A stretch of DNA of 64,000 nucleotides from Ophelia neglecta (lineage: Eukaryota), in NCBI GenBank assembly GCA_965285935.1, contig OZ260666.1, positions 4,898,001-4,962,000 of the forward strand, in the 5' to 3' direction. The notes under the pieces are model-generated. The model ran no database searches, was not told where the DNA came from, and was given only the letters and a program-made list of their open reading frames with translations. Both the position numbers and the translations under genes were made by a program. Below, one piece after another: positions 1 to 44,052 of the stretch. Position 1 is the stretch's first letter. Each line of letters begins with the position of its first letter.

Positions 1-1580
1 CGTAGGATAATCTGGTCTTCTTCTTTCTCATGTAGCAGTTGATTTTTCAACAAAATTTTAAAGCACTGAGCAAAATACATACTGGGAGAACATTGTACAC
101 CATGCTGTTCTTTCCTAGGAATGGAAACACAAAATCGCTTTGGATATTGTAGGTTTTCTAAAGGCGATAAGTCCCATTTCACGAAATATTGTAATTCGTC
201 AAAAGTTCCAACTTGATTGTTCATGTAGAAGCTTCCAGTGCCTTCCAAGACATCACTAGGTCTAAACATTTCAGTTGACGTATGGGGAGCTTCATTGTGA
301 CCCTTCCCACTTTTCTGGACGACTCTATTATCCTCTTGGCAAATAGCAATGCAGCAATTGTGAAGCAGGTTTTCCACTTGTGTATGAATAGCGTGTACGT
401 CTGAGTTAAAACAGCCCGTGTATTCTCCGTCCAGACGCTCGGTACATTTTTTTATATGCGTTGCCTGTTCTATTGCCTTCATCCGAACAATGTACTGTTT
501 GTCTTTTGATTCGACGATTTTGGTCATTACATTCGCCACACGGTCAGGACAACATGTTGCTAAGCTCGCTAGCATTGTATCCTGTGGTCTATTGGCATTT
601 AACTTTCCCGACAATGCTTTTTCGAAGGTTGTTAGTTCATGATTGTCAACAACGTCCAACCTGTTGGATGACAAAGCTTTTTCTCTTTCAGGTCCCAAAA
701 AATGGACTTTAGGGCCCTTCTCAGCTAGAAAGTCTAAAATGTCAGTGTGTCTGTTCTCACATGCTATGTCCAAAGCAATTTGTCCGGTCTGGCATGGTTG
801 ATTTATATCGGATCCAAAATCGTACAAGACGCGTACAATATCTAAATGACCTGCTCCAGAAGCGAGATGTAAAGGGGTGAAACCATTCACCCCAGCAAGA
901 TTTACTTTAGCGCCTCTCTTGACAAGGAGTTCAACCACGTCTAAATGGCCCTTGGCGGAGGCTGCACAAAGAGGGCTGTTTCCACAGCTCAACGTGTTAA
1001 CCTTTGCTCTATGCTTACACAGATAATCTACGATTTTTGTGTAACCTTCCCTAGACGCCAATTGAATTGGGGTTAATCCTTCAGACCAAGCGAAATTCAC
1101 TTTTGCTCCTATTTTGACCAGATATTCTACAATATCCTTTTTTCCGTAGACAGCGGCGATCCCGAGAGGTGTGTACCCAAGCTCCTCTATTAGGTTTAAG
1201 TCAGTTTCTCTGTTCGATGCAATTTGTCTGACTTCATTGAAATTTCCGTTCAGAACAGCCTCGTGTATAGGACGGTTGCCTGATGTTTTCAATAATTTAA
1301 GATCATTTTCGCCTAGATCTATTGGAAGGCTCCCCTCTGCGCGTCCGTAAGTGACGTGTTTATTTTTAATGCTGTCTATACCTCCCTTACTACCTAATAA
1401 CGGGTCTGGTAGCTTGGTGGCGTCTTGATGTGGAACAAGAGACTGCGTTGGACAATTTGTATCTGTATCTTCTTGGTCGCCATTGTGTAGGGCCTCGCTC
1501 TCGATGTCAAGTAGTGGCCGACCCTCTTCTGATTTGCGGAAATTAGGTTGGTCTAATTCGTCATGCGCGATACCCTCCTC
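1..1580 (-). CDS. Gene A last exon: 6 ankyrin repeats fused in frame to a Mab-21/cGLR domain
   Basis: Hand translation is open from the acceptor at 1581-1582 to base 1: EEGIAHDELD...RPIHEAVLNG...TPLGIAAVYG...TPLHLASGAG...ALDIACENRH...VENLLHNCCIAICQED...VLEGTGSFYMNNQVGTFDELQYFVKW...EDQIILR. Not in the ORF track because no stop is reached. Confidence 0.9.
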
Positions 1581-4500
1581 CTAAGGAAATAGAAGTTTTG
1601 AGGTAAATATATCGTTTATGCTGTGTTTAAACAAAGTGTCAATAGAATGTAAATAATGGGCTTGCCCTTGATGTATATTGGAATTATTCTTAAACAAATA
1701 GGTAATTGTTCAACATATATTGTTTGTTGGGACTCTAACAACAAGAAACTGAACCTATATTTTAGAAATATTATACCTGAGAGACCGAAACATTCCAATT
1801 ATCTGTCTAATACTACTTGAAACTGTCTGCATTCACTCCCGGTATTCTCTACTTGTTAATAGAATGCAAAACATGGACTTACATCTGATTGAAAGGAACC
1901 AATACATAACTTATGTCAAGATAAGAAATGAATTACCTGGTCTGGCTTTATTCCTATTTCATTTCTTTGCATTTTAACGTAGCTGTAGACTACCACAGGT
2001 ACAATGGTATATCTAGAAACAGCAAAAGCGGCGGCGAGGAGGCAAAGCAACACGATTGCTGCGACGGCGATACCGACGATGGCTGTAGACGATCTGTTCT
2101 GGATTGCAACCTGGCCAGCTGCATGCAAAGGTTGTGTTGATTCTTCGGTAAACGGTTCCTTACCAGCGATCTGGGATATCGCTGTCGATAAGGCATCGAT
2201 ATTGGAAGTACTAAATGTGTTTGTGTAAGTGGTTTCTGTTGGAAGGATCCTGGTTGACATTTCATTCGGCACAGAACCTACTAAAATAGCTATATTAAAA
2301 CACACAATGCTAGAACAGCGATTATTTAATATATTAATATTCATTTTGACAAGACTATCATAATGGACATAAAAATAAACGGTTAATATCTTTGCCAGAA
2401 CAAGCATAGATTACAATGAATTGTAGGCATCTTTTTATCATCATGTTCATGTTATATGTGTAAATATCTTTGGAATAGTTCCGACGATGTTGTCCTAAAA
2501 ATAGACGACAACGCCTACTCAGGTTCATAGAATACACAATATACAAGAGCCAGCTTGTCAATAGCGTTAAATATGAATTCTAATTTCCGTAAGTCTACTA
2601 GTGGGCAAATATATAACTAGTGAACATTTATTGATTTTGAAGTTCGCGGCCACCCTTTGTTTGCGCGGCAGGGTAGTGTGGTCTGAAGTAATTGGTCGAT
2701 GGGAGCTTGCAAAATATTCAACGCTTATAGCAGCAAATTTCATTTCATCAATACATTGTTCTACCAATTTTGACATTGAAGTGTATTTATGATAAAGGTC
2801 ATTTTATAGTAGATTGAATAGATTCAGATTTCATTCATGACAAACAGGCTCTCTTTAACTAAATATTGTTATTTTAGGAGAAGTGTATTCGTATGTCTTT
2901 TGCACGATTTATTGTTTCATAATATGGCGGCTACATTATTACATAGATAAATGCATCATGAACCACAACAACAAGCTGTTTATAAATTGATAAAAAGCAA
3001 TGCATATGCATGCCTCGATTTCAATGTGATTTCTTTTATTTAGTTGGGCCTATTATGTTAGTCATAACATGAAACATCTCATCCTAACTGAAAACAAGTG
3101 CTGTCAATTATAATTCAGCAGCACAAACTGTATCTGAGTAAATCAAGTAAGCTGGTTTAAGATTAATTCAATAAGTATTGGCTTGTATTATGTCAATCAG
3201 CGTCATCAAATCTAATTCTAGAACTTGATGCTCAGTGCCACAGTGTGATTTGTGATCACCTTTTATCGAGCGAGACCACTGGTTGCATGGGGTTTAGCAA
3301 CTCATTGCCCCTGGAATCTTTTTGACACATTAAGCAAGGACGTGGCTCACTTTAGTGGAAAGCGTTTGTGTAATAATTTCCATGCGGTTAATCAGCTGTC
3401 CGGTTGTTTGATTTAGCTCGAAATGACAGTTGTAATTATGCCAGTAATATAAACAATTGATGGACATTTGAGTCAGAAAGAGTTTCGCAATCAAACTATT
3501 GTCCTATTATCAAAAGTTAAATATTTATTAACCCTACGATACCATTATTCAGATGTCATAAGAAGCATTCATGAAACGACAGTATAATTCAACAAGAATG
3601 AAAAGGTAACTGTCAACCAGTATACAAACCGCTGTAGTAAACTTGTAATGTGGTTGAGCTGGGCTCTAAAGCTATGAACGTTAGAGTTACTTCAACCTCT
3701 TGCTGTAGCACGTTACCAAAATGAAATTCTCCATCACACTCGTAATCGTGGTCTGAATGTCCAGTACAGGAATGCTGCTTCTCGCCTGTTGATAAAGTAC
3801 AATATACCGGAGGTTCGGCGGCAGGGATGGCTACAATCAATCGTAACATTCCTGGTTTTTTTAGCTCCAGCGTTTTGTTCCTTATAACAAATTTACGACT
3901 TGACTCGCCATACATCTGACTGTAGGAGATGGCTGGCTGCAGATATTTCTCCCGATCTGGGCACGCTGATAAAAAAAATCTGATCAACATTAATATTAAG
4001 TAAGAAATAACGTTTGCTTATAATACTTCTTGGAGGAATATAATCACTTTTTTTGCATTTTAATGATTTATAAATCTCTGAAAAAGCACATTGATCTATA
4101 TTATTCCTCGCTTAATACACGGCAGTCTAAGGTGCTCGTATACCGCGATACAAGGCATCAGATAATGCTCATTACATAAAATAATATAAAGGATTCAGGC
4201 TCTCCTGTTTGTTACTAATTAACATAGGTAAGTAATAGTATTAAATGAACACTAAGCACTAAAATGTGTATTAAACTTATACCATGCAGTTAAAATTGCA
4301 TTCATTTATAGCCATCTCGGTGAGTGAAACAAACAAACTTTAGCCATGTGTATATTGCGGCGTCGTTATATTTTGTTTTGCCTAAGTACATTTGCAGTAC
4401 TATGTTCAGGCGTTAAGCTATGACATACACAAGTATTAAGTCGACGAAATCACATTAAAACTCGATAAAATGCCAAAACCAAACCTATATTCACCTGAGG

Positions 4501-5362
4501 ATGTTAACACGCGTAATTCGGCAGAGTCGTGGATAAGTGTGACCAGTCCTTTAAGATAAACCTGTAATTCATAGGTACCACCGTCTGATGAAGATGCACT
4601 GTCTAATTTGATTCCGTAGGTACTGTTCTCAATCAGGTGGACGTTGTCAGTGCGTATTAGAGGCACTTTTTGTTTATCAATGCCAATAAGTAACTTCAAA
4701 TCTGGTTTAATCTTGTAAAAGTATACATAATCAACCTGATCCGGGTCGCCCTTGTAGCTCCAGAGCAGTCGGGCGGTGTCTCCTTCGCAGACGTGTACAG
4801 TTCCCGGACCCAGGAGCCATCCTGTAACAATATAAAGATAATTTGCGAGATTCGAACAAATTATGCGCTACTCCAACCCCGAACATCATGAATGCTTTGT
4901 AGTGCCGACCTTGATGTTACCTATTACAAATATTTTGCATGACATTCATTGAACCNNNNNNNNNNNNNNNNNNNNNNNNNNNNNNNNNNNNNNNNNNNNN
5001 NNNNNNNNNNNNNNNNNNNNNNNNNNNNNNNNNNNNNNNNNNNNNNNNNNNNNNNNNNNNNNNNNNNNNNNNNNNNNNNNNNNNNNNNNNNNNNNNNNNN
5101 NNNNNNNNNNNNNNNNNNNNNNNNNNNNNNNNNNNNNNNNNNNNNNNNNNNNNNNNNNNNNACGAAATTATTGCAGGGTGTTATGCTGAAGGTTTAATTC
5201 ATGATTTTAGTGCTTTAAGTGAGAGTAAATGTCGAAATGAAAAAGGAACCCAGCAAATTGTAACTTACCATCCTCTGTGTTACAGACTCCAGCATACTGT
5301 AAAAATAATACAGTGAGCAATACGATTTTGAAAAACAGCATCCCACTAGAATCACAGATCAT
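1..5362 (-). CDS. Gene A: type I membrane receptor, SP-IgV-like-beta domain-stalk-TM-6x ankyrin-Mab-21/cGAS-like domain (3' end beyond window)
   Basis: Exons 5362-5269 (MICDSSGMLFFKIVLLTVLFLQYAGVCNTED, signal peptide), 4821-4495 (Ig), 3965-3630, 2277-1937 (stalk+TM), 1580-<1. All GT-AG, phases 1,1,1,0; exons 1-4 are the same lengths as in gene B (94/327/336/341 nt). About 890 codons without a stop in the window. Confidence 0.88.
1937..2277 (-). CDS. Gene A exon 4, Ser/Thr-rich stalk and transmembrane helix
   Basis: AIVGIAVAAIVLLCLLAAAFAV hydrophobic stretch; acceptor TTTTAGTAG, donor CAG/GTAATT. Confidence 0.85.
4495..4821 (-). CDS. Gene A exon 2, V-like Ig domain without canonical disulfide
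   Basis: GDTARLLWSY...YGIKLDSASSSDGGTYELQV: DxGxY tyrosine corner present; phase-1 junctions. Confidence 0.85.
4956..5161. other. Assembly gap in gene A intron 1
   Basis: Run of N. Confidence 0.99.
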
Positions 5363-10722: not shown

Positions 10723-13409
10723 TGAAGATTAATTAAGTGTGCGAAGGTTTAGGTATGGTATTTAAAACTCGGAACGTTGCCAAAGGCCCGATCGACGTTA
10801 TATATAACACACAGATTTTGAAATACTTGTCTGACTTCCTTTACTAATAAAAGTGCATCTGTACACCAACGATATATTAGTAGATACGATGCATGTAAAA
10901 GCTGGCCAAAGTGTATCAGTATCAGCTCATACACAGTACAGTATATCTATTTTGCAGGTATTTAGCATATATTGTGTTTCTCAGAGATAATATCACCTCG
11001 TGAGAAACAAATCGGTCCCTCATAAGATACAAGACGGTACATATCGAGTTTATGGTATCAATACAAAATTTAAACTTTAACCCTGATTATTTGAGATTAA
11101 TCTATCCCTAAATTTTATTTTTGCCAACTGGTAAATTTCATGTTTCTTGCCCAGTATAGCATGCCGACTAATATGACAAAATCCTCTTCGCCACATCCAC
11201 CCCTTATCGACTGCCCCTCCTCTACAACTATGGTTAAATGACCGTCAATAATATGCGACAAACACTTAGACCAGTGACATTTATACCTTAATCTCACTGA
11301 ATGTGCTACCCTATAATTCTTAGGTTTCTTAGGCAATGAGCCTCTGATTAATTTTTTTGCTCAAATGTTTTCTGTTCTTAGGGAGGGGGGTGGGGGTTAT
11401 ATTATGATTTCATACTTGACAAACTTACTGATCGAGATATTTCAGCCCAAATGTAAATGTCCTCGGTCCCATAGGTTATCAGCCTTGCTATTATAGCCCA
11501 TACAAATATGTATGATATTCCGGCTACGAGATATCATTCCACGTCCATCGCCTAAAGGCTCAGGCCTTTATCACGTCTGTACGACTTATGTTTAGTAAAA
11601 AAGTTGAACTAAGTGAATTTTCGAAGCCAAATACGCAATAACCAAAGAAGTGGATATCAATGAAGACAATGTATTTTAATATCTGACGTCATGAGACAGC
11701 TGTCCAAATGCTACTGTGATTCGTTTGTCGGTTTCTGACAGGTTCGGAATTGTAATCAAGTGAAGATGGGGACAACCTTACTCTTCTATTGTGGAAATGC
11801 CCGGAAACGGCGTGCCACATGTTTTAGGGGAAGAACACACTTGTGTCATCTCAAAGTACTACAAATTCTTGCCAAGATACTAAGGAGTATTAAAATCTGT
11901 AATATTTAATTAAGTATTTAGATTATCAATTGTAGATTTCAAGAATTCCAATTTAAAAAAGGATAATTTACCGCAAGAAAATATCAACAGTTTGCGAATG
12001 AACTCGAAACCTCTCAGTAAAAAGTTGGTTTAGATACGGTTAAGCTGGTTAACATGGCAACCACTTACAACATTCAGTAAATAAATGTCTCATAGTCTCC
12101 ACTGTCATATAATCATAACTCCATCATATTTGAAGTATGCATGTCAGGTAATAGCTGATGGTGAAGCGCTTATGTCAATTTGTTAACCCTTGGTTACCAA
12201 GGCAACGGGCATCATAACCAAGCAAAGTTTTATTCATTTCTAGCAAAACCTACCTGGACTTTACATAAAAATTTTGTAACTTTTGGACAGTTTTCTATTT
12301 ATGACATCAAATGTGCACCATTGTTACAGCAGGTCACGTGATGGTTCACCTTAATTCTAGTCCTAAGGTTTCATGCAAAAACTAATGTGGATCATCTTAC
12401 ATAATCAACATTCTTGTGAAAACCCTTAGCACGCTTCCAGAACATTGGTATGTTGGTAAAAAGGCTAACCATTATCGTGAATGCCGTTCAAAGAAAATAT
12501 TTTGACACACTGAGGGACGGGCCTATGTCTGGTGAAATGGGATCAAGACACAAGAGCAGATGATGGTGGTCAAATTGACAGTTGAATGAATAAGTAACTC
12601 TGCCATATTATCACAACTAGAAGAATTACAAGTTTAAAACGCTCATACATTAAGTACTTGTAACGATGCTTAGTGCTTAAACCATTATATACTACTACCA
12701 TATTTCCTGCTCAGTTACTAGAGGTACTTCTGACAAATTTACAGCAGCTTGAACACTATAATTACATGTCTAGTTAGCACCTGTTTCGTGAAATCATTTT
12801 ACATCATTGTTTTCATTACGCTTCTTTTCAACAGCCGATTTGTACGCTATAATTAGCTTCGAAATAAAGTTGTATTGTCGTAAGAGTGCACCACACTCCG
12901 GCTCGGTGTTCTCTCTGTTATTAAGTAACTCGCTTCCAAATAAGGAACACCTACTCGAAGGAACAATTTCACTGAGCCTGTTTTTAACAACTGAGATTGT
13001 AAGGGGAAGGAGAACACGGGATTTTAGTCGAATCAATGCAGAACGTTCCCTCCGGTTTTTGGGCATAGTTCAGCAAAGCAAATATAAAGGCACGCGTTCA
13101 TCTTATTTGGTTATTTAGAAGCTTTCTGCCAATGAGAATGTTTCATTTTCAACAACATTAGTAACGCAATGTCCTCCCGGGGATATTTTCCCACGTATTG
13201 GGAATTGCATTGTTTCAACACTCATCCAAAGCTAAATAGGATGAGTAATAATTCACAGGCAGACTGGTCAATGTCTGCGTTATTCCCAGCACATTTCTCT
13301 ACCACGACTTTCTTTCTGGGAAGGCCGACTATTCTCTGCAGATATCCCATCGTAACAGCGAAGAACAGCAAAATCTTCGCTTCATCCGACAAAATCATAA
13401 AAAAGAGAA

Positions 13410-36600: not shown

Positions 36601-39600
36601 TTCTTTTAGGCTCTAAGTATTCCTTCGATATTGGGGCTTCAAGGCTTTTCCATAAAACGCACTGTCAATTTGAAGAAAATGATCCTATCTAATTGGATTT
36701 TGAAGGTTTGTCCAGGCCCAGAAATCGTTTAACTGGACAAATGCAATAACAATAAGGCTTGACTCAGAAAATAACGAAAAGAAAGAAAGAAAGAAAGAAA
36801 GTTGCTAACTGAAACGTTTTGCTCCATGTATAGAATCAATTACTCCTCACGATATTTTCCACACAGCGATTTTTCGGTAACAGTTTAGCTCGTGAGTGTT
36901 GTGAGATTGGGAACTGCGCTGTGAACACATGTTTGGGCCACAGGTCAATACAAGAACAGCAAGTTGGTGTTATGAGGCGATATCATTCAATCATAAGCAT
37001 AGGAAAAGATTGTGTGACACAGCCGATAAATAAGAGGAGCTTTATAAATTCAACATATTTAAGAAAAGGCTAAAATCAAATTATTTCATTTTTGATGCGC
37101 AAATAGTAGTTAATTAAACAATAAATTGATCATTAAATTAATGATCCCAGCAAATTTGGGAGGTTAAACGTTGAAGAAATGGAAAGAGACATCAAGTGTC
37201 AGGGCCCCTAATTTCAAACAAATGTCGACTTTCTAAACCATGTACATTAAATCAGTAAGAACTCCTTCGGGAGTACTCGGACCATCGCGTTGCTAAGAAT
37301 AACCTTGATTGGTAAGTTCATCGCCAGTTGTTAAGCCATAGATGAAAGGCATTTGCGTTTGACATTCAAAGTGAATGCCAGTGTGACTATAAAGGATTCC
37401 ATCGCATGGGTGTCATTGATTTGATACATTCATAAGTTCACTGCCCATGAATAAGGAAAACATAACAAATTTGATTCTCATGAGTTAATTTTGTTTTAAG
37501 ACTTGGTAAATGTTTATTTTTAGTTGCAGATCACACGCATGCTGTGAGGTAAGATAAAGAGAGACACGTCCACCCTCCACAAAGACTAAGCTCCATATTG
37601 AACAAAATGGTCCTTACTACTCCAGGCATACTCTCATTTATAACTGTATTGCTGATTATATCAGTCGTGCAGTATGCTAGAGTCTGCAAGGCACAGGATC
37701 GTAAGTGATCTTTCTCCACTTGCACCGCTTTTTCCTTTTGTTCGGTTTCCTTACCGATTTAGGGACTGAATTCCTACTAAATATGATTATATCATTCTTA
37801 TGTATGATTTTTGTACTTCATTATGCCCCAACTAGCTATTGTGGTTTGAGTGTGATATCCATCCAAGGCGGTGCGAATATTGCTATCAATAAAATGAACC
37901 CCACTGCGTATTATAAATAATAACGTTTTATTTATACATTTCTGTGTTTTAATCAATATATAATTATATTCACTTCTGGTTCTGTTTAATAACTTCCGGG
38001 ATGCAAAGTACCGCCAGTAACTGTTATACGAGGTTACACCTTGTATTCGTATCCACACCGTAGCTGTTATTTGCTCAAAACGTCTTTAGGACATATTTTT
38101 CTAGTGTAAAGCAAGCAACCGTAAAGGGCGTTCGCTAAAGTAGCACAATGAATGTCATTTAATTTTAATCAACATGCTGAGCTTTTTAGATCATGAAATA
38201 AACAATCCTATGCCTTGCTCGATATACGACAAAATTACTAATTTCGCACTCAGACAAACTATTGTTGAAAATTCAGCAATCAGGTTTAAAAAACAGTGTT
38301 TCCTTATTGGATGGCATAGTGAAATGAGTGATTTTGAACTCGTAGCTTCTTACAGATTTCATCCAATTATAATCACAAAATAAACTTTATTAACGGATAT
38401 AGTCCCTGACTGATATCATTTATGCTGATATTAAGCACCAAGCATCTGTAAATAGATGAACTGTTATTTGCGAGTTGATAATTGGAGTAGAATATACAAT
38501 CATTTAAGGCTTTATTCTTGTTTCTTCGTTCCGTTCTAGCATGGCTCCTGCGACCAGGAACTGTACACGTATGTGAAGGAGATACCGGCCGACTGATCTG
38601 GAACTACAACCATAGTATAGGAAAGTTTGATAGAGTACAGTTCAATTTTGATCCACCAGAATGGAAGTTCCTCCTTGTGCTGAGCAAGCAAGATCTAAAA
38701 TCAATCGACCGCGTTCATATGATTGAGAACAGCACCTACGGTATCGAATTGGACAATGTAACTTTATCAGATAATGGGACATATGGCATCGAAATTTATT
38801 TAGACGATGGGCTCGTTAAAAAAGTGATAGATGACAAATGTGAAATGCGTGTGTTGAAATCCTCAGGTAAAACCAACGTTGGCAGTGTAATTGGTAATTT
38901 TATATTGTCGTTCTCTGCTTAATTGTTATGCTTGATATGGATTTGATAGTGAAATAGTGAAATGACAATAGAACAATAGAACAAAAAACCGTTACATATT
39001 TTCTTTTTCTCAACAACCTACAAAAACTCTTGCGAATATCTGAATGTTGATTAGAGTGTTCTGTCTTTTTCAGCATGCCCAGATCGGGACAAATATCTGC
39101 GACCAGCCATCTCCTTCAATCAAGTGTTTGGCGAATCCAACAATGTGATTAGTATACGTGATAAAACGCTAGAGCTTCTCAAACCAGGAAATGTACGATT
39201 GACTGTACCAATTCCTGCTGCCGAACCTCCGGTGACGTGTACCTTATCAACAGGCCAGAAACACCACACCTGTCCTGAAAAATCAGACCAAGATTACAAC
39301 TGTGAGAAAGTATTTCATTTTGGTGATATGCTGCAGCAAGATGTCGAAATTACTCTGTCGTTCGTTGCTTTAGAAACCAGTATAACTACAATACACGTTT
39401 ACAACAAAGGTTTGTGCACCCTTTGATAGTAACATGTTTTGTACGCTAGGTCGGTCTAGGCTTAACCTTTGACAAAAGGATAAGCTTTGATATCGACACT
39501 AGTTTTCAGACAAATGTGGCTTGATTACCCCTGTCACTCCAAGCAGTTCGCAGCTAAATTATAACACTGGACCAGTGCTTAGAATACATGGTTATAATAG

Positions 39601-42600
39601 CACGAATATTGTTTCTATTTAACTGGTCAGTAACTTGTCTAAAGTGCAATAAATAGTCCAAGTCGTTCTGCTCAGTCGGGACATTACCCTTCCACATGCG
39701 AGTTGCGTAGTAAACGCCCTGACTGATAACATTCACTAAACCACTAGTCGTCAAATCACATCACAAGACAGTAGGACCATATGACAAATAAGATTTGATG
39801 ACGCTGATTGACATAATACAAGTCAAGACTTATTGAATTTATCTTAAACCAACTTCCATGATTTACTAAGATACAGCTAAATTGTGCTGCTGAATTAAAA
39901 ATTGACAGCACTTGTTTTCAGTTAGGATGAGCTGTTTCATGTTATGACTAACATAATAGGCCCAACTAAATAATAGAAATCACCTTGAAATCGAGGCATG
40001 CACATGCATTGCTTTTTATCAATTTATAAACTGCTTATTGGTGTATTTCATGATGCATTTATCTATGTAAAAATATAGCCGCCACATTATGCAGCAATAA
40101 ATCGTGCAAATGACATACGACTAGACTTCTCCTAAAATGACAATATTTAGTAAAAGATAGCCTGTTTGTCATCAATGAAATCTGAATCTCTTCAATCTAC
40201 TATAAAATTACTTTTATTATAAATACTCTTCAATGTAAAAATTGGTAAGAGAACAATGAATTGATGAAATGAAATGTGCTGCTGTGTTTAATATTTTGCA
40301 AGCTCCCATCGGCCAATTACTTCAGACCACACTACCTGCCGCGCAAACAAAGGGTGGCCGCGAACTTCAAAATCAAAGTTATAAATGTTCACTAGTTATA
40401 TATATTAGCCCACTAGTGGCTCACGGCAATAGGGAGAGGGATATTCTCGCAACTACTAACGTTTCGGAATTAAACTGGCTAGATGATTAGAATTCATATT
40501 AACGTTATTGACAACCTGGCTCTTGTGTATTGCGTCTTGTATGAACCTGTGTAGGCGATGTCGTCTATTTTTTAGGACATCATCGTCGGACCCTTTTCCA
40601 AAGATATTTACACCTATAAAAGGAACATCATGATAAAAAGATTCCTACAATTAATTGTAATATATGCGTGTTTTGTAAAAATAATTACCCGTTTATTTTT
40701 ATATCCATTTTAATCGTCTTGTCAAAATGAATATTTATATATTAAATGGTCGCTGTTCTAGCATTATGTGTTTTAATATAGCTATTTTGATAGGTTTTGT
40801 GCCGAATGAAATGTCAACCAAGATACTTCCAACGGAAAACAAAGTCAAAAACACATTTAGTACTTCCAAGATCGATGCTAAATCGACAGCGATAACCCAG
40901 ATAGCGGGTAAAGAACTGTTTACCGAAGGATCAACACAACATTTGCATGCGGCTGGTCAGGTTGCAATCCAGAACAGATCATCTACAGCCATAGTCGGTA
41001 TCGCCGTCACGGCAATCGTGTTGCTTTGTCTCCTCGCCATCGCTTTTGCTGTTTACAGATATACAATTGTACCTGTGGTAGTCTACAGCTACGTTAAAAC
41101 GCAAAGAAATGGACTAGGAATAAAGCCAGATCAGGTAATTCATTTCTTATGTTGACAAACGTTATGTATTGGTTACTTTAAATCAAGTGTAAGTAAATTG
41201 TCAGCATTCCATTGACAAGAGAATATCGGGAGTGAATGCAGACAGTTTTAAGTAGTATTTGACAGATCCTTGGAATGTTTCGGTCTCTCAGGTATTTTAT
41301 TTCAAAAGGATAGGTTCAGTTTCTTGCTGTTAGCGTCCCAACAGAACATAAAAACAAAATCATGTGTAAGTTAAATTTACGCGGCGCCAATCAATAGATA
41401 TTTAACAATTGCCTATTTGTTTAAGAATAATTCCAATATACATCAAGTGCAAGCCCATTACTTACATTCTATTGACACTTTGTTGAAACAATATATTTAC
41501 CTTTAAAACTTCATTTTCCTTAGGAAGTGGGTATCCCGCTTGATGTATTAGACCAACCTACTCTCCGCAAATCAGAAGACGGCCCAACACAGTCTCTTGC
41601 TCCACATCAAGACGCCACCCAGCTACCAGACCCGTTACTAGGTAGTAGGGGAGGTATAGACAGCATTCAAAATGAACACGTCAGTTACGGATGCGCAGAG
41701 GGGAGCCTACCAATAGACCTAGGCGAAAAGAATGTTGAAATATTGCAAATATCAGGAAAACGTCCTATACACGAGGCTGTTCTGAACGGAAATTTGAATG
41801 AAGTCAGACACATTGTATCGAACAAAGAAATTGACTTAAACCAACCAGAGGAGCTTGGGTACACACCTCTCGGGATCGCCGCTGTCCACGGACGAAAGGA
41901 TATTGTAGAATATCTGGTCAAAGTTGGAGCAAAAGTGAATTACGCTTGGTCTGAAGGATTAACCCCAATACAATTGGCGTCCAGGGCAGGTTACACAAAA
42001 GTCGTAGCTCATCTTTGTAAACACGGAGCAAATGTTAACAAGTTGAGCTGTGGGAACAGCCCTCTTTGTGCAGCCTCCTCCAAGGGCCATTTAGACGTGG
42101 TTGAACTCCTTGTCAAGAAAGGCGCTAAAGTAAATCTTGCTGGAGTGAATGGTTTCACCCCTTTACATCTCGCTACTGGAGCAGGTCATTTAGATGTTGC
42201 ACGCGTCTTGTGCAATTTTGGAGCAGATATAAATCAACCATGCCAAACCGGACAAACTGCTTTGGACATAGCATGTGAGAACAGACACACTGACATTTTA
42301 GACTTTCTAGCTGAGAAGGGCCCTAAATCCATTTTAGGTCTGCAAGAGAAAAACATTGTCATCTAACAGGTTGGACGATGTTGAAAATCATGAAGCACCA
42401 ACAACCTTCAAAAAAGCATTGATGGGAAAGTTAAATGCCAATACACCCCAGGATACCATGCTAGCGAGCTTAACAACTTGTTGTCCTGACCGCGAGTCGA
42501 ATGTAAAATTCAAAACAATCAAAATCGATTAATTAAAAGACAAACAGTACGTAGTTACCATGAAGGCATTAGAACAGGCAACGCATATAAAAGCATGTAC

Positions 42601-43030
42601 TGACCGTCTGGACGATGAAGGCACGGGTTGTTTTAACTCAGACGTACACGCTTTTCATACACAAGTTGAAAAGCTGCTCCACAATTGCTGCATTGCAATT
42701 TGCCAAGATGTTAATAGAGTCGTCCAGAAAGGTGGGAAACGAGACAATGAAGCTGCCCCTGCTTCAGCTGAAGCGTTTAGACGTGGCGATATCTTGGAGA
42801 GCACTGGACGCTTCTACATGAACAATAAAGTTGGAACGTTTGACGAATTACAATATTTCGTGAAATGGGAGTTATCTTCTTCGGAAAACCAACAATATCC
42901 ATAGCCAATTTGTGTTTCCATACCTAGGATAAAACAACATGGTCTACAATGTTCTCCAAGTATGTATCTTTGAAACTTTGTTGAAAAATCAACTGCTGCA
43001 TGAAAAAAAAAGACCAAATTATGCTACGAT
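33700..43030. repeat. Right arm of inverted segmental duplication (left arm ~1-9900)
   Basis: Reverse-complement matches: 9260-9900 vs 33700-34440; 7570-8248 vs 34442-35050; 2300-3220 vs 39790-40790; all A/B exons; base 1 aligns to ~43029. Confidence 0.9.
37607..42366 (+). CDS. Gene B: paralog of gene A, open as SP-Ig-beta domain-stalk-TM-6x ankyrin (646 aa), truncated before the Mab-21 domain
   Basis: Exons 37607-37700, 38540-38866, 39074-39409, 40794-41134, 41524-42366 (TAA). Same junctions as gene A; a frameshift at ~42328-42355 relative to A leads to the stop. Confidence 0.8.
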
Positions 43031-44052
43031 GTGATCCAAATACACAAGGCCCGGGATTATGTGTGGGACTCTCATGGGTCTGTCCCTCAGAGCATACACA
43101 TGACCTCCGACTTAGTATAACACCCGTCGTTGTGTGGAAAGACAAACTGATGTCTGAAGTATGTCAAATTCCCGATGCCATGAAAAAGGCCCCATTTGAG
43201 TCCATTATGGATGACTTTATCAAAATGCGAGTTGTATTAATACCAGACCCCAATATTGATATAACTGTCGAAGAAGAATACATCACCTCGTCCTGGAAAG
43301 TGTCATTTGATGACACAGAACGTCTAATATTTAGATGCTTAGACGATATTTCATCAAATATCAGGACATGTTTCCACCTTCTGCAATTGCTCAACAACTT
43401 TCTACCCACGAGAATAACTCGTTCTGAAGAGCATGACGTTTGGAAATGCCACCCGGTGATATCGTCCTACGTGCTGTACAATACACTGCTTCAGGTGTGG
43501 ATTAAACATCCAACCAAGGCTGAATGGGATGACCATAATTTTCCCGACCGACTGGTCAGTTGCCTTGATTCTCTCAGCAAATTTACCTATCAAGACTTTC
43601 TCTCGGAGAAGACAGAGCCGTCTATACAGATTTCCCACCTCAACCATATACAACAGCAAACTCTAAACGGCATACTTGGCTCTGACCTGAAGGAGATCCT
43701 CAACATACTGCACCAAAAGGGAACGCGTATGACGAGAAAGGACTCCATCACCCAGACGCTTGGCAAAACAAACAAAGCCATACAAAGACGTTCTTTAGGA
43801 AGGGCATCAGTATACGCCAAATATGACGTCATCTGTGTGCTTAGCTTGAATGCAGCAGACGGTGTGCATTACACCGTGCATTCTGGCTGGAAGGAAGTAT
43901 ATGCATCTGGGCATCTTAAGAAGAAAACCTATGTAGGAATTACAGATGGCTCTTATTGCTACAGGATTCCTGCACCAAACGTCTCTTGTAGAAAGTTTCA
44001 CCTGTATGAAAATATGTATGATTTCATTTTGAAAAAGTTTGAAACAAGTTAA
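42328..44052 (+). pseudogene. Disrupted Mab-21/cGAS-like region of gene B
   Basis: Versus gene A: frameshift ~42328-42355, TAA 42530-42532 (GAA in A), TAG 42902-42904 (AAG in A), 11-nt deletion ~42966, A-run indel ~43003-43011. Mab-21 motifs are clear: TGRFYMNNKVGTFDELQYF, GPGLCV, LRLSITPVV, WKVSFDDTERLIF, RTCFHLLQLL, ISSYVLYNTLL, HPTKAEWDDHNFPDRLVSCLDSL. Confidence 0.8.

Follow-up and report, generated by a model that had tools for sequence, protein, structure and literature searches.

The window analysed here, a 64,000-nt stretch of the Ophelia neglecta genome, contains at its left end gene A, which consists of five exons on the minus strand. Exon 1 (e1, 5269-5362; 94 nt) provides the ATG and a hydrophobic, signal-peptide-like leader, comprises 31 codons plus one base and ends at a GTAAGT donor. 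It is followed by exon 2 (e2, 4495-4821; 327 nt, phase 1-1), encoding a V-set-like Ig domain, exon 3 (e3, 3630-3965; 336 nt, phase 1-1), encoding a second, Cys-containing ectodomain, and exon 4 (e4, 1937-2277; 341 nt, phase 1 to 0), encoding a Ser/Thr-rich stalk, a transmembrane (TM) helix and a short basic stop-transfer tail before a GTAATT donor. Exon 5 (e5) starts with an acidic cytoplasmic juxtamembrane linker (1284-1580; 99 aa, 21 D+E vs. 10 K+R) and continues with six ankyrin repeats, as counted by eye (705-1283; e5 residues 100-292). The rest of e5 inside the window (1-704) encodes a linker or N-terminal extension and the start of a Mab-21/cGAS-fold domain.

The sequence-only reading of this DNA had proposed that these exons splice in frame into one protein. 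Indeed, all borders were canonical GT-AG and the phases of 1-1-1-0 join the exons in frame. When the sequence was extended to the left of base 1, e5 proved to be a single open frame of 867 codons that runs 1,021 nt beyond the window (L001:480-1500) to a stop codon 1,021-1,024 nt left of it (L001 477-479), giving a model protein of 1,233 aa. An assembly gap (N, 4956-5161) lies within intron 1 and crosses no coding frame. The flanks of this gap are 96-98% identical to intron 1 of the nearest gap-free paralog, L039, in the same order and orientation, and 84 nt lie between their counterparts there. The exon sizes of a second copy, gene B (37607-44049, plus strand), were likewise found, as had been claimed, to be identical to those of gene A (94/327/336/341), and its splice sites are canonical.

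To the Pfam V-set model, e2 of gene A matched with an E-value of 9e-5 and 23.1 bits, which is below the cut-off of 26 bits. The same model was matched by eight of the nine paralogous e2 exons (E <= 0.01; best 1.9e-7), and an e2 profile gave weak matches to JAML and CD2. In the alignment of the paralogs, with strands assigned by eye, the canonical B-F disulfide is absent from e2: an invariant Trp occupies the place expected for the B-strand Cys, the F-strand motif Y-x-x lacks a Cys, and one conserved Cys lies earlier. The e3 domain has conserved Cys residues in the paralog alignment; it gave no Pfam match, its profile found one weak match, the Ig region of FCRL5 (E 2.5e-4), and atlas features gave no indication of its fold. 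N-x-S/T sequons are present in e2 and e3 (one each) and in e4. The TM helix (2083-2018) is 22 aa long, with a Kyte-Doolittle mean of 2.47 over 21 aa, and is followed by R/K residues. The sequence of gene A shows features expected of a type I single-pass membrane protein (leader, one TM helix, sequons and basic residues after the helix), and we predict such a protein, the signal peptide and topology being called by hydropathy heuristics and sequons only. The e1 exon was also found upstream of e2 in gene B, L039, L040, L045 and L047 (42-90% aa identity), and e4 is 85% identical at the aa level between genes A and B.

Profile searches for Mab-21, Mab-21_C and Ank, which had been suggested as a check, gave a divided answer. 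The ankyrin repeats of gene A were recovered by Pfam Ank_2 (E 1.1e-36), Ank (1e-34) and Ank_3 (2e-29), whereas the match to Mab-21_C (PF20266) reached 21.8 bits, below the gathering cut-off of 24.1, and the NTase-domain model PF03281 (Mab-21) gave no match in gene A. Weak Mab-21_C matches recur, however, in gene A and five divergent paralogs. A profile of the in-genome paralogs retrieved 69 proteins, 28 of them with Pfam Mab-21_C (best 2.4e-16). Against solved structures, the best match of the family profile was cGLR1 (8gjy; E 4.7e-14), and cGAS followed at approximately 1e-8; MiD51 structures were absent from the PDB profile matches at E <= 1.

The predicted structure also supports the assignment of the C-terminal region to the cGAS/Mab-21 fold. 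The AF2 model of this domain (pLDDT 86, pTM 0.87) is bilobal, with an NTase core and a C-terminal helical lobe of the Mab-21_C / PAP-OAS1-like type. The quality of the model depends on the wider alignment, since AF2 fed only with the in-genome paralogs reached a pLDDT of 42. All top Foldseek matches were cGAS (E 3.5e-11, prob 1.00), and VIA-align gave a Z of 18.8 and an rmsd of 3.9 A over 283 aligned residues spanning model residues 6-430. With language-model features, 28 of the 30 nearest clusters were Mab-21 clusters, and a TMEM102 cluster and MID51-like_C were among the feature-based neighbours.

Gene A belongs to a tandem family of approximately 22 loci within approximately 580 kb, roughly half of which are broken. 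The exons e1/e2/e3/(e4)/e5 follow each other in this order on a single strand in L039, L040, L041, L042, L043, L045 and L047 as well as in A and B, so that the proposed Ig, TM, ankyrin and Mab-21 architecture gains support not only from in-frame splicing but also from its conservation in at least nine paralogs. The receptor-linked copies form one monophyletic clade (SH-aLRT 100), which sits inside an in-genome expansion. Between genes A and B, aa identity is 42-64% over e1-e3 and 72-90% over e5, and the ectodomain exons have mosaic histories between copies. As judged by dN/dS, which was 0.22-0.35 between deeper paralog pairs, the Mab-21 domain is under purifying selection.

Since about half of the family loci are pseudogenes, an intact frame is no proof of function. 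Gene A could be an unexpressed or decaying copy of a birth-and-death family that is intact by chance, as at least 8 of the approximately 22 cluster loci, gene B among them, carry frameshifts or stops. We consider this improbable, because, across 3.7 kb of coding sequence, none of its five exons or splice sites is broken, comparisons with close and mid-distance paralogs give a dN/dS of 0.25-0.35, and two paralogs that are 93-94% identical over exon 5 are fully open too. It is similarly unlikely that two adjacent genes were co-duplicated, one for a short-tailed Ig-TM protein and one for a separate cytosolic ankyrin-Mab-21 protein, and that their fusion is an artefact of the model. Such a two-gene unit would also yield collinear paralogs, and the domain's relatives outside the receptor group are ankyrin proteins of a cytosolic type, without Ig or TM. 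Moreover, if translation continues past the e4 donor, it reaches a stop within 7 codons (ORF 1916-2407), so a short-tailed Ig-TM product is also possible; the three public runs that contain the DNA of this locus are genomic contigs and hold no splice joints, and the 5.8-billion-protein collection returned no protein from O. neglecta or a close species. However, the e5 frame of gene A opens exactly at a TAG|G acceptor, with an in-frame stop at the acceptor, and in 7 of 11 paralogs it begins exactly at a pyrimidine-tract TAG acceptor. The first Met of e5 lies 31-336 codons downstream in most paralogs (336 in gene A; 110, 87 and 31 in others). For this reason e5 alone cannot start a protein containing the ankyrins, and a stand-alone product would lose most or all of them. 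The 356-nt intron between e4 and e5 contains no other candidate first exon that we could see. The divergent paralogs L041, L042, L043 and L045 also have a stalk-TM exon placed between e3 and e5, and the match of the phase-0 GT donor of the TM exon to the phase-0 pyrimidine-tract/AG acceptor persists in paralogs separated by a dS of up to approximately 0.8-1.8. We infer the e4-e5 splice from this comparison of paralogs, and the expression of gene A is likewise presumed.

The output of the tail had been likened to that of receptor guanylyl cyclases, a reading that the catalytic residues do not support. In gene A, the GS motif (236-231, minus strand) is kept, in line with G19 and S20 each being present in at least 90% of the 66 aligned rows. 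The E-L-Q motif (197-189, minus strand) and a Ser occupy the triad positions, which departs from the pattern [E/D]-h-[E/D] ... [E/D]. All eight receptor-linked members examined, that is gene A and seven paralogs, read G-S / E-L-[Q,K,R] / [S,I,V], where the family has G-S / E-x-D / D. The full set is retained in 44 of the 58 other aligned members, and the triad E-x-D and D is kept in non-receptor paralogs of the same genome and in external relatives. The second and third metal-binding acids, which we take to be equivalent to human cGAS D227 and D319, are thus replaced in all eight receptor-clade members, and inactive NTase-fold proteins are typically recognised by the absence of two of the three acids. 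Because of this loss in all eight members, we regard the domain of gene A as a putative pseudoenzyme, in which synthesis of a nucleotide second messenger is unlikely. A catalytically active receptor, in which an outside ligand switches on such synthesis inside the cell, might still be argued from the retained cGAS fold, G-S motif and first acidic residue, and from the genome, which has matches to the STING ligand-binding domain as well as at least 79 to the canonical Mab-21 NTase, so that the pathway exists here. Given the residues at the second and third positions, we hold it to be highly improbable; gene A supplies no "receptor cyclase", and the tail probably acts as a scaffold rather than as a signal-making enzyme.

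The explanation that we favour, and consider fairly likely, is a single five-exon gene for an Ig-type type I receptor whose ankyrin and pseudo-NTase tail has a scaffold role. Its extracellular part would comprise the signal peptide, the V-set-like Ig domain, the second Cys-containing domain and a glycosylated Ser/Thr stalk; beyond one TM helix, the acidic linker, the six ankyrin repeats and the C-terminal cGAS/Mab-21 NTase-fold domain would face the cytoplasm. The C-terminal domain descends from a large expansion, within this genome, of Mab-21-like genes that are ankyrin-flanked and catalytically competent, and in the receptor-linked clade it would have become a pseudoenzyme by losing the second and third metal-binding acids. 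In the mechanism that we find most likely, the variable Ig ectodomain would bind an extracellular ligand, and the tail would then serve as a scaffold, for docking or for ligand binding, that brings in partners from the cytosol but makes no nucleotide signal of its own. A more specific proposal, which we regard as doubtful, is an undescribed class of surface receptors in which a diversifying Ig ectodomain is combined with a cGLR-derived pseudo-NTase/ankyrin module that regulates or nucleates active ankyrin-cGLR paralogs, or senses their nucleotide products. If true, extracellular recognition would be linked to cGLR-STING-type signalling by a receptor that is itself no enzyme. The favoured reading would describe a lineage-specific family in which an Ig-type surface receptor acquired a cGLR-derived domain as its tail, catalysis having been lost beforehand or in the process, with immune domains re-used by exon shuffling. 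Triad-intact ankyrin-flanked and triad-dead receptor paralogs in one genome offer a contrast for asking what a dead cGAS fold does.

The common view of cGAS-like receptors is that they are soluble sensors in the cytosol. In the portions of Li et al. (2023, PMC9980059) covered here, the described invertebrate cGLRs are soluble proteins, 87% of them stand-alone enzymes; the ANK-cGLRs resemble gene A in joining a Mab-21/cGAS fold to ankyrin repeats, and the cGLR domain table contains no Ig Pfam or SMART identifiers and neither "immunoglobulin" nor "transmembrane". The setting, a massive cGLR expansion together with STING, is also shared with this genome. Unlike the described ANK-cGLRs, gene A lacks two catalytic acids and stays below the Pfam Mab-21 thresholds.

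Membrane-tethered relatives exist as well. The Mab-21 domain of ITPRIPL1 is not known to be catalytic, and MiD49/51 are membrane-anchored, catalytically inactive adaptors and receptors for Drp1, which sit in the mitochondrial outer membrane by an N-terminal anchor and are not known to have an ectodomain or ankyrins. Within the Mab-21 family, ITPRIPL1 is a membrane protein of type I (PMC2794190, PMC11357910), and MiD49/51 (SMCR7/SMCR7L) and TMEM102 are in the Mab-21-family list of NTase-fold proteins (PMC2794190). ITPRIPL1 and ITPRIPL2 offer the nearest functional parallel to a layout of ectodomain, TM and Mab-21, but they lack an Ig ectodomain and ankyrin repeats and do not form a tandem multigene family, and no sequence relationship to gene A closer than the shared superfamily was detected. 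Fusions of ankyrins to cGLRs and Mab-21 pseudoenzymes tethered to membranes (ITPRIPL1, MiD49/51) are known precedents. The claim of an undescribed architecture holds for the full combination of Ig, TM, ankyrins and Mab-21, of which we found no description in the literature and domain sources searched, but not for a membrane-tethered Mab-21 domain as such. If the model holds, the family would be an invertebrate counterpart to these vertebrate pseudoenzymes.

The family also resembles invertebrate Ig-superfamily immune-type receptor families in its tandem cluster, many pseudogenes, mosaic ectodomain histories and a V-like ectodomain that has diverged further than the cytoplasmic portion. It differs in its tail, which is not of the kinase, TIR, death or ITAM/ITIM-only kind but has ankyrin repeats and a dead NTase.

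The window (C9:4898001-4962000) comes from a 762-Mb eukaryotic genome whose introns are of the GT-AG type. Gene A lies on its minus strand at positions 1-5362 and comprises five exons whose borders are all canonical. Exon e1 (5362-5269, 94 nt) supplies a Met and, after it, a hydrophobic leader, e2 (4821-4495, 327 nt) encodes a V-set-like domain, e3 (3965-3630, 336 nt) a Cys-containing domain of about 110 residues, and e4 (2277-1937, 341 nt) a Ser/Thr-rich stalk and a transmembrane (TM) helix. Exon e5 starts at 1580, remains open leftwards past window base 1, and carries a linker, ankyrins and a C-terminal module. Since the intron phases are 1, 1, 1 and 0, the exons join in frame. The sequence-only reading had called for the contig to be extended to the left, and this was done: in L001, the locus that reaches 1,500 nt left of window base 1, the e5 frame stays open until a stop 1,021-1,024 nt outside the window edge. 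Exon e5 is thus a single open frame of 867 codons; all five exons together encode a model protein 1,233 residues long.

A run of Ns (4956-5161) falls between exons e1 and e2, within intron 1, and is crossed by no reading frame. With order and orientation kept, its flanks match intron 1 of the closest paralog without a gap at 96-98% identity; there they are spaced 84 nt apart, between that paralog's exon 1 and exon 2. Because of this collinearity, the scaffold join is consistent with a continuous intron, although it does not prove one.

The e2 domain matched Pfam V-set with an E-value of 9e-5 (23.1 bits, below the 26-bit cut-off), and V-set was matched by eight of nine paralogous e2 exons (best 1.9e-7). 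The canonical Ig disulfide is absent from e2 in the alignment of nine paralogs (window 4495-4821, minus strand): an invariant Trp occupies the expected B-strand Cys position, and the F-strand Y-x-x motif contains no Cys. One other Cys and a sequon-bearing I-E-N-S-T-Y-G stretch are invariant in all nine. The Cys residues of e3 are conserved among its paralogs; this exon had no Pfam match, its language-model features were uninformative, and it showed a weak match to FCRL5. There is one N-x-S/T sequon each in e2, e3 and e4. The TM helix predicted in e4 (2083-2018) spans 22 residues with a Kyte-Doolittle mean of 2.47 and is followed by basic residues. Directly after it (1937-2017, minus strand), two stretches, S-R-Y-T-I-V and V-V-Y-S-Y-V, conform to the loose ITIM pattern [S/I/V/L]-x-Y-x-x-[I/V/L]; as they abut the membrane, this may mean nothing. 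Exon e5 opens with an acidic linker of 99 residues, continues with six ankyrin repeats (Ank_2, 1.1e-36), and ends in a module of approximately 540 residues.

The sequence-only reading had assigned this module to the cGAS/Mab-21 fold. Taken alone, the gene A module reached only 21.8 bits for Mab-21_C (cut-off 24.1) and had no match in a phmmer search of the PDB; five paralogs of only 35-50% identity showed the same weak Mab-21_C match. In the PDB, a profile built solely from 16 in-genome paralogs matched nothing but cGLR1 (E 0.033). When the same profile was run against 1.84 billion representative proteins, 69 proteins were found, and 28 of these contain Pfam Mab-21_C (best 2.4e-16), several over the cut-off. 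The family alignment was widened to 66 sequences. Against solved structures, the resulting profile reached 4.7e-14 for cGAS-like receptor 1 (8gjy) and about 1e-8 for dozens of cGAS chains, with a collinear alignment from the G-S motif through the C-lobe helix. With this alignment, AlphaFold2 gave a model with pLDDT 86 and pTM 0.87; it superseded a model from the 16 in-genome paralogs only, which was unusable (pLDDT 42). The best Foldseek matches of the module model were all cGAS (E 3.5e-11, probability 1.00), and VIA-align gave Z 18.8 and an rmsd of 3.9 Å for 283 residues aligned over model residues 6-430. Mab-21 clusters accounted for 28 of the 30 nearest neighbours in language-model features. 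Profile, structural model and Foldseek agree, and the modelled C-terminal module of e5 does have the cGAS/Mab-21 fold.

That the ectodomain exons and e5 belong to one gene is the least secure part of the model. Three sequencing runs containing this DNA, from one sample and study, covered introns and exons evenly, and splice joints were not seen in them; they are therefore genomic DNA and uninformative on expression. Homology searches of a protein collection returned no match for e5 residues 300-867 and one generic ankyrin fragment for residues 1-200, so that neither this species nor a close one is represented there by a transcript-derived protein. The comparative evidence for one gene is fairly strong. 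As the sequence-only reading had argued, the paralog gene B (37607-44049, plus strand) has exon sizes identical to those of gene A; its splice sites are canonical. On the same chromosome arm, another seven paralogs have e5 preceded, in the same orientation, by e2 and e3, and e1 and e4 are recognisable in four of them. In the most divergent paralogs, a stalk-TM exon of their own separates e3 from e5 and closes with a phase-0 GT donor, and in 7 of 11 paralogs the e5 frame begins exactly at a pyrimidine-tract TAG|N acceptor. A Met is present at codon 2 of e5 in two paralogs only; the first Met lies 336 codons into the frame in gene A, and 110, 87 and 31 codons in others. Because it has no early Met in frame, e5 by itself cannot begin an ankyrin-containing protein. 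Exons e1-e5 probably form one fused receptor gene, as judged from these comparisons, and the two-gene reading is improbable. A short-tailed Ig-TM isoform is also possible, since read-through of the e4 donor meets a stop after 7 codons.

We compared the catalytic positions across the family alignment. G-S, E-x-D and a later D, whose counterparts in cGAS and cGLR1 are G-S, E-F-D and V-D, are kept in 44 of 58 members outside the receptor clade (the copies with Ig-type ectodomain exons before e5), including non-receptor paralogs from the same genome. All eight receptor-linked paralogs that we compared, gene A among them, have G-S, E-L-[Q/K/R] and [S/I/V] in a region where the alignment is ungapped. 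The C-terminal domain of gene A is therefore almost certainly not an enzyme, to judge from these residues. In a tree calculated without three N-terminally truncated rows (L058, P0012 and P0027), the receptor clade forms one monophyletic group (SH-aLRT 100) that sits inside the in-genome expansion. Its two nearest neighbours, L053 (G000:C9:19290413-19291714), which lies in an 898-codon frame of e5-like size, and L057 (G000:C9:12087648-12088979), are degenerate at the catalytic positions too (K-x-E/I and K-x-S/N). Catalysis may therefore have been lost before the Ig-TM fusion, or these loci may be further receptor-type genes. The dN/dS of the dead domain is 0.22-0.35 in deeper comparisons, which argues that it is a conserved pseudoenzyme and not merely decaying sequence.

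We propose that the gene A product would be a type I receptor that uses its variable Ig ectodomain to bind an extracellular ligand, and whose tail of ankyrins and dead NTase would form a scaffold for docking or ligand binding. The earlier comparison with receptor guanylyl cyclases presupposes catalysis, and the E-L-[Q/K/R] and [S/I/V] residues in 8/8 paralogs argue against it. Membrane-tethered pseudoenzymes of the Mab-21 family would be a better analogy; MiD49 and MiD51 are inactive adaptors. The human family includes ITPRIPL1, ITPRIPL2, TMEM102 and SMCR7/SMCR7L (MiD49/51), and ITPRIPL1, a type I protein with a single membrane pass, binds CD3 epsilon through its ectodomain (PMC2794190, PMC11357910). 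Li et al. 2023 found 87% of cGLRs to be stand-alone enzymes and reported fusions to ANK and TPR (PMC9980059). The part of their domain table available to us has ANK entries, none of six common Ig Pfam/SMART identifiers, and neither "immunoglobulin" nor "transmembrane". In full-text literature searches, we found no paper describing Ig, TM, ANK and Mab-21 together, in keeping with the sequence-only reading, which knew of no such architecture. Precedents exist for every element and every pairwise combination; all four parts together, in an expanded tandem family that has lost catalysis across the clade, seem undescribed.

Approximately 22 loci with this e5 lie at 4.41-5.00 Mb of contig OZ260666.1 (C9), and roughly half, gene B included, contain frameshifts or stops. 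The e5 match of gene B is split into three pieces in different frames (41524-42327, 42344-42970 and 43003-44049), so that gene B is frameshifted near the ankyrin end and the start of the Mab-21 region. Amino acid identity between genes A and B is 42-64% in the ectodomain exons, 85% in the TM exon and 72-90% in e5. Relative to its closest paralog, the Mab-21 domain of gene A is 96% identical (dS 0.08) and e3 65% (dS 0.42), comparing window 1-1580 plus L001 with L002, and window 3630-3965 with L039:5120-5446; other paralog pairs show the opposite pattern. These mosaic histories suggest that, within the cluster, gene conversion or shuffling has acted at the scale of exons.

A family-profile HMM scan of the window detected genes A and B only. 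An isolated tblastn match to the C-lobe (e5 residues 637-749; 40% identity, E 2.6e-12) was seen at 13081-13407 on the plus strand; the family HMM, applied to open frames of at least 30 aa, missed it, and it may be a remnant of a further family copy that has decayed.

Elsewhere in the genome, the domain is present in more than 50 other copies, which lie in giant intronless open frames of 1,200-5,333 codons, with ankyrin arrays on both sides (C9 1.2-2.8 and 10.8-23.4 Mb, C1 137.9-143.0 Mb, C2 112.5-113.0 Mb, C10 and C12; loci L031-L038 and L049-L068). Most keep the full G-S/E-x-D/D set, and by sequence they seem to make up a large family whose members are giant ankyrin-cGLR-like proteins. Pfam Mab-21 (PF03281) has at least 79 matches over the cut-off genome-wide, none of them inside the 4.4-5.0 Mb cluster of C9, and STING ligand-binding-domain matches were found on C1 and C9. 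From these matches, the organism has a large canonical cGLR repertoire together with STING.
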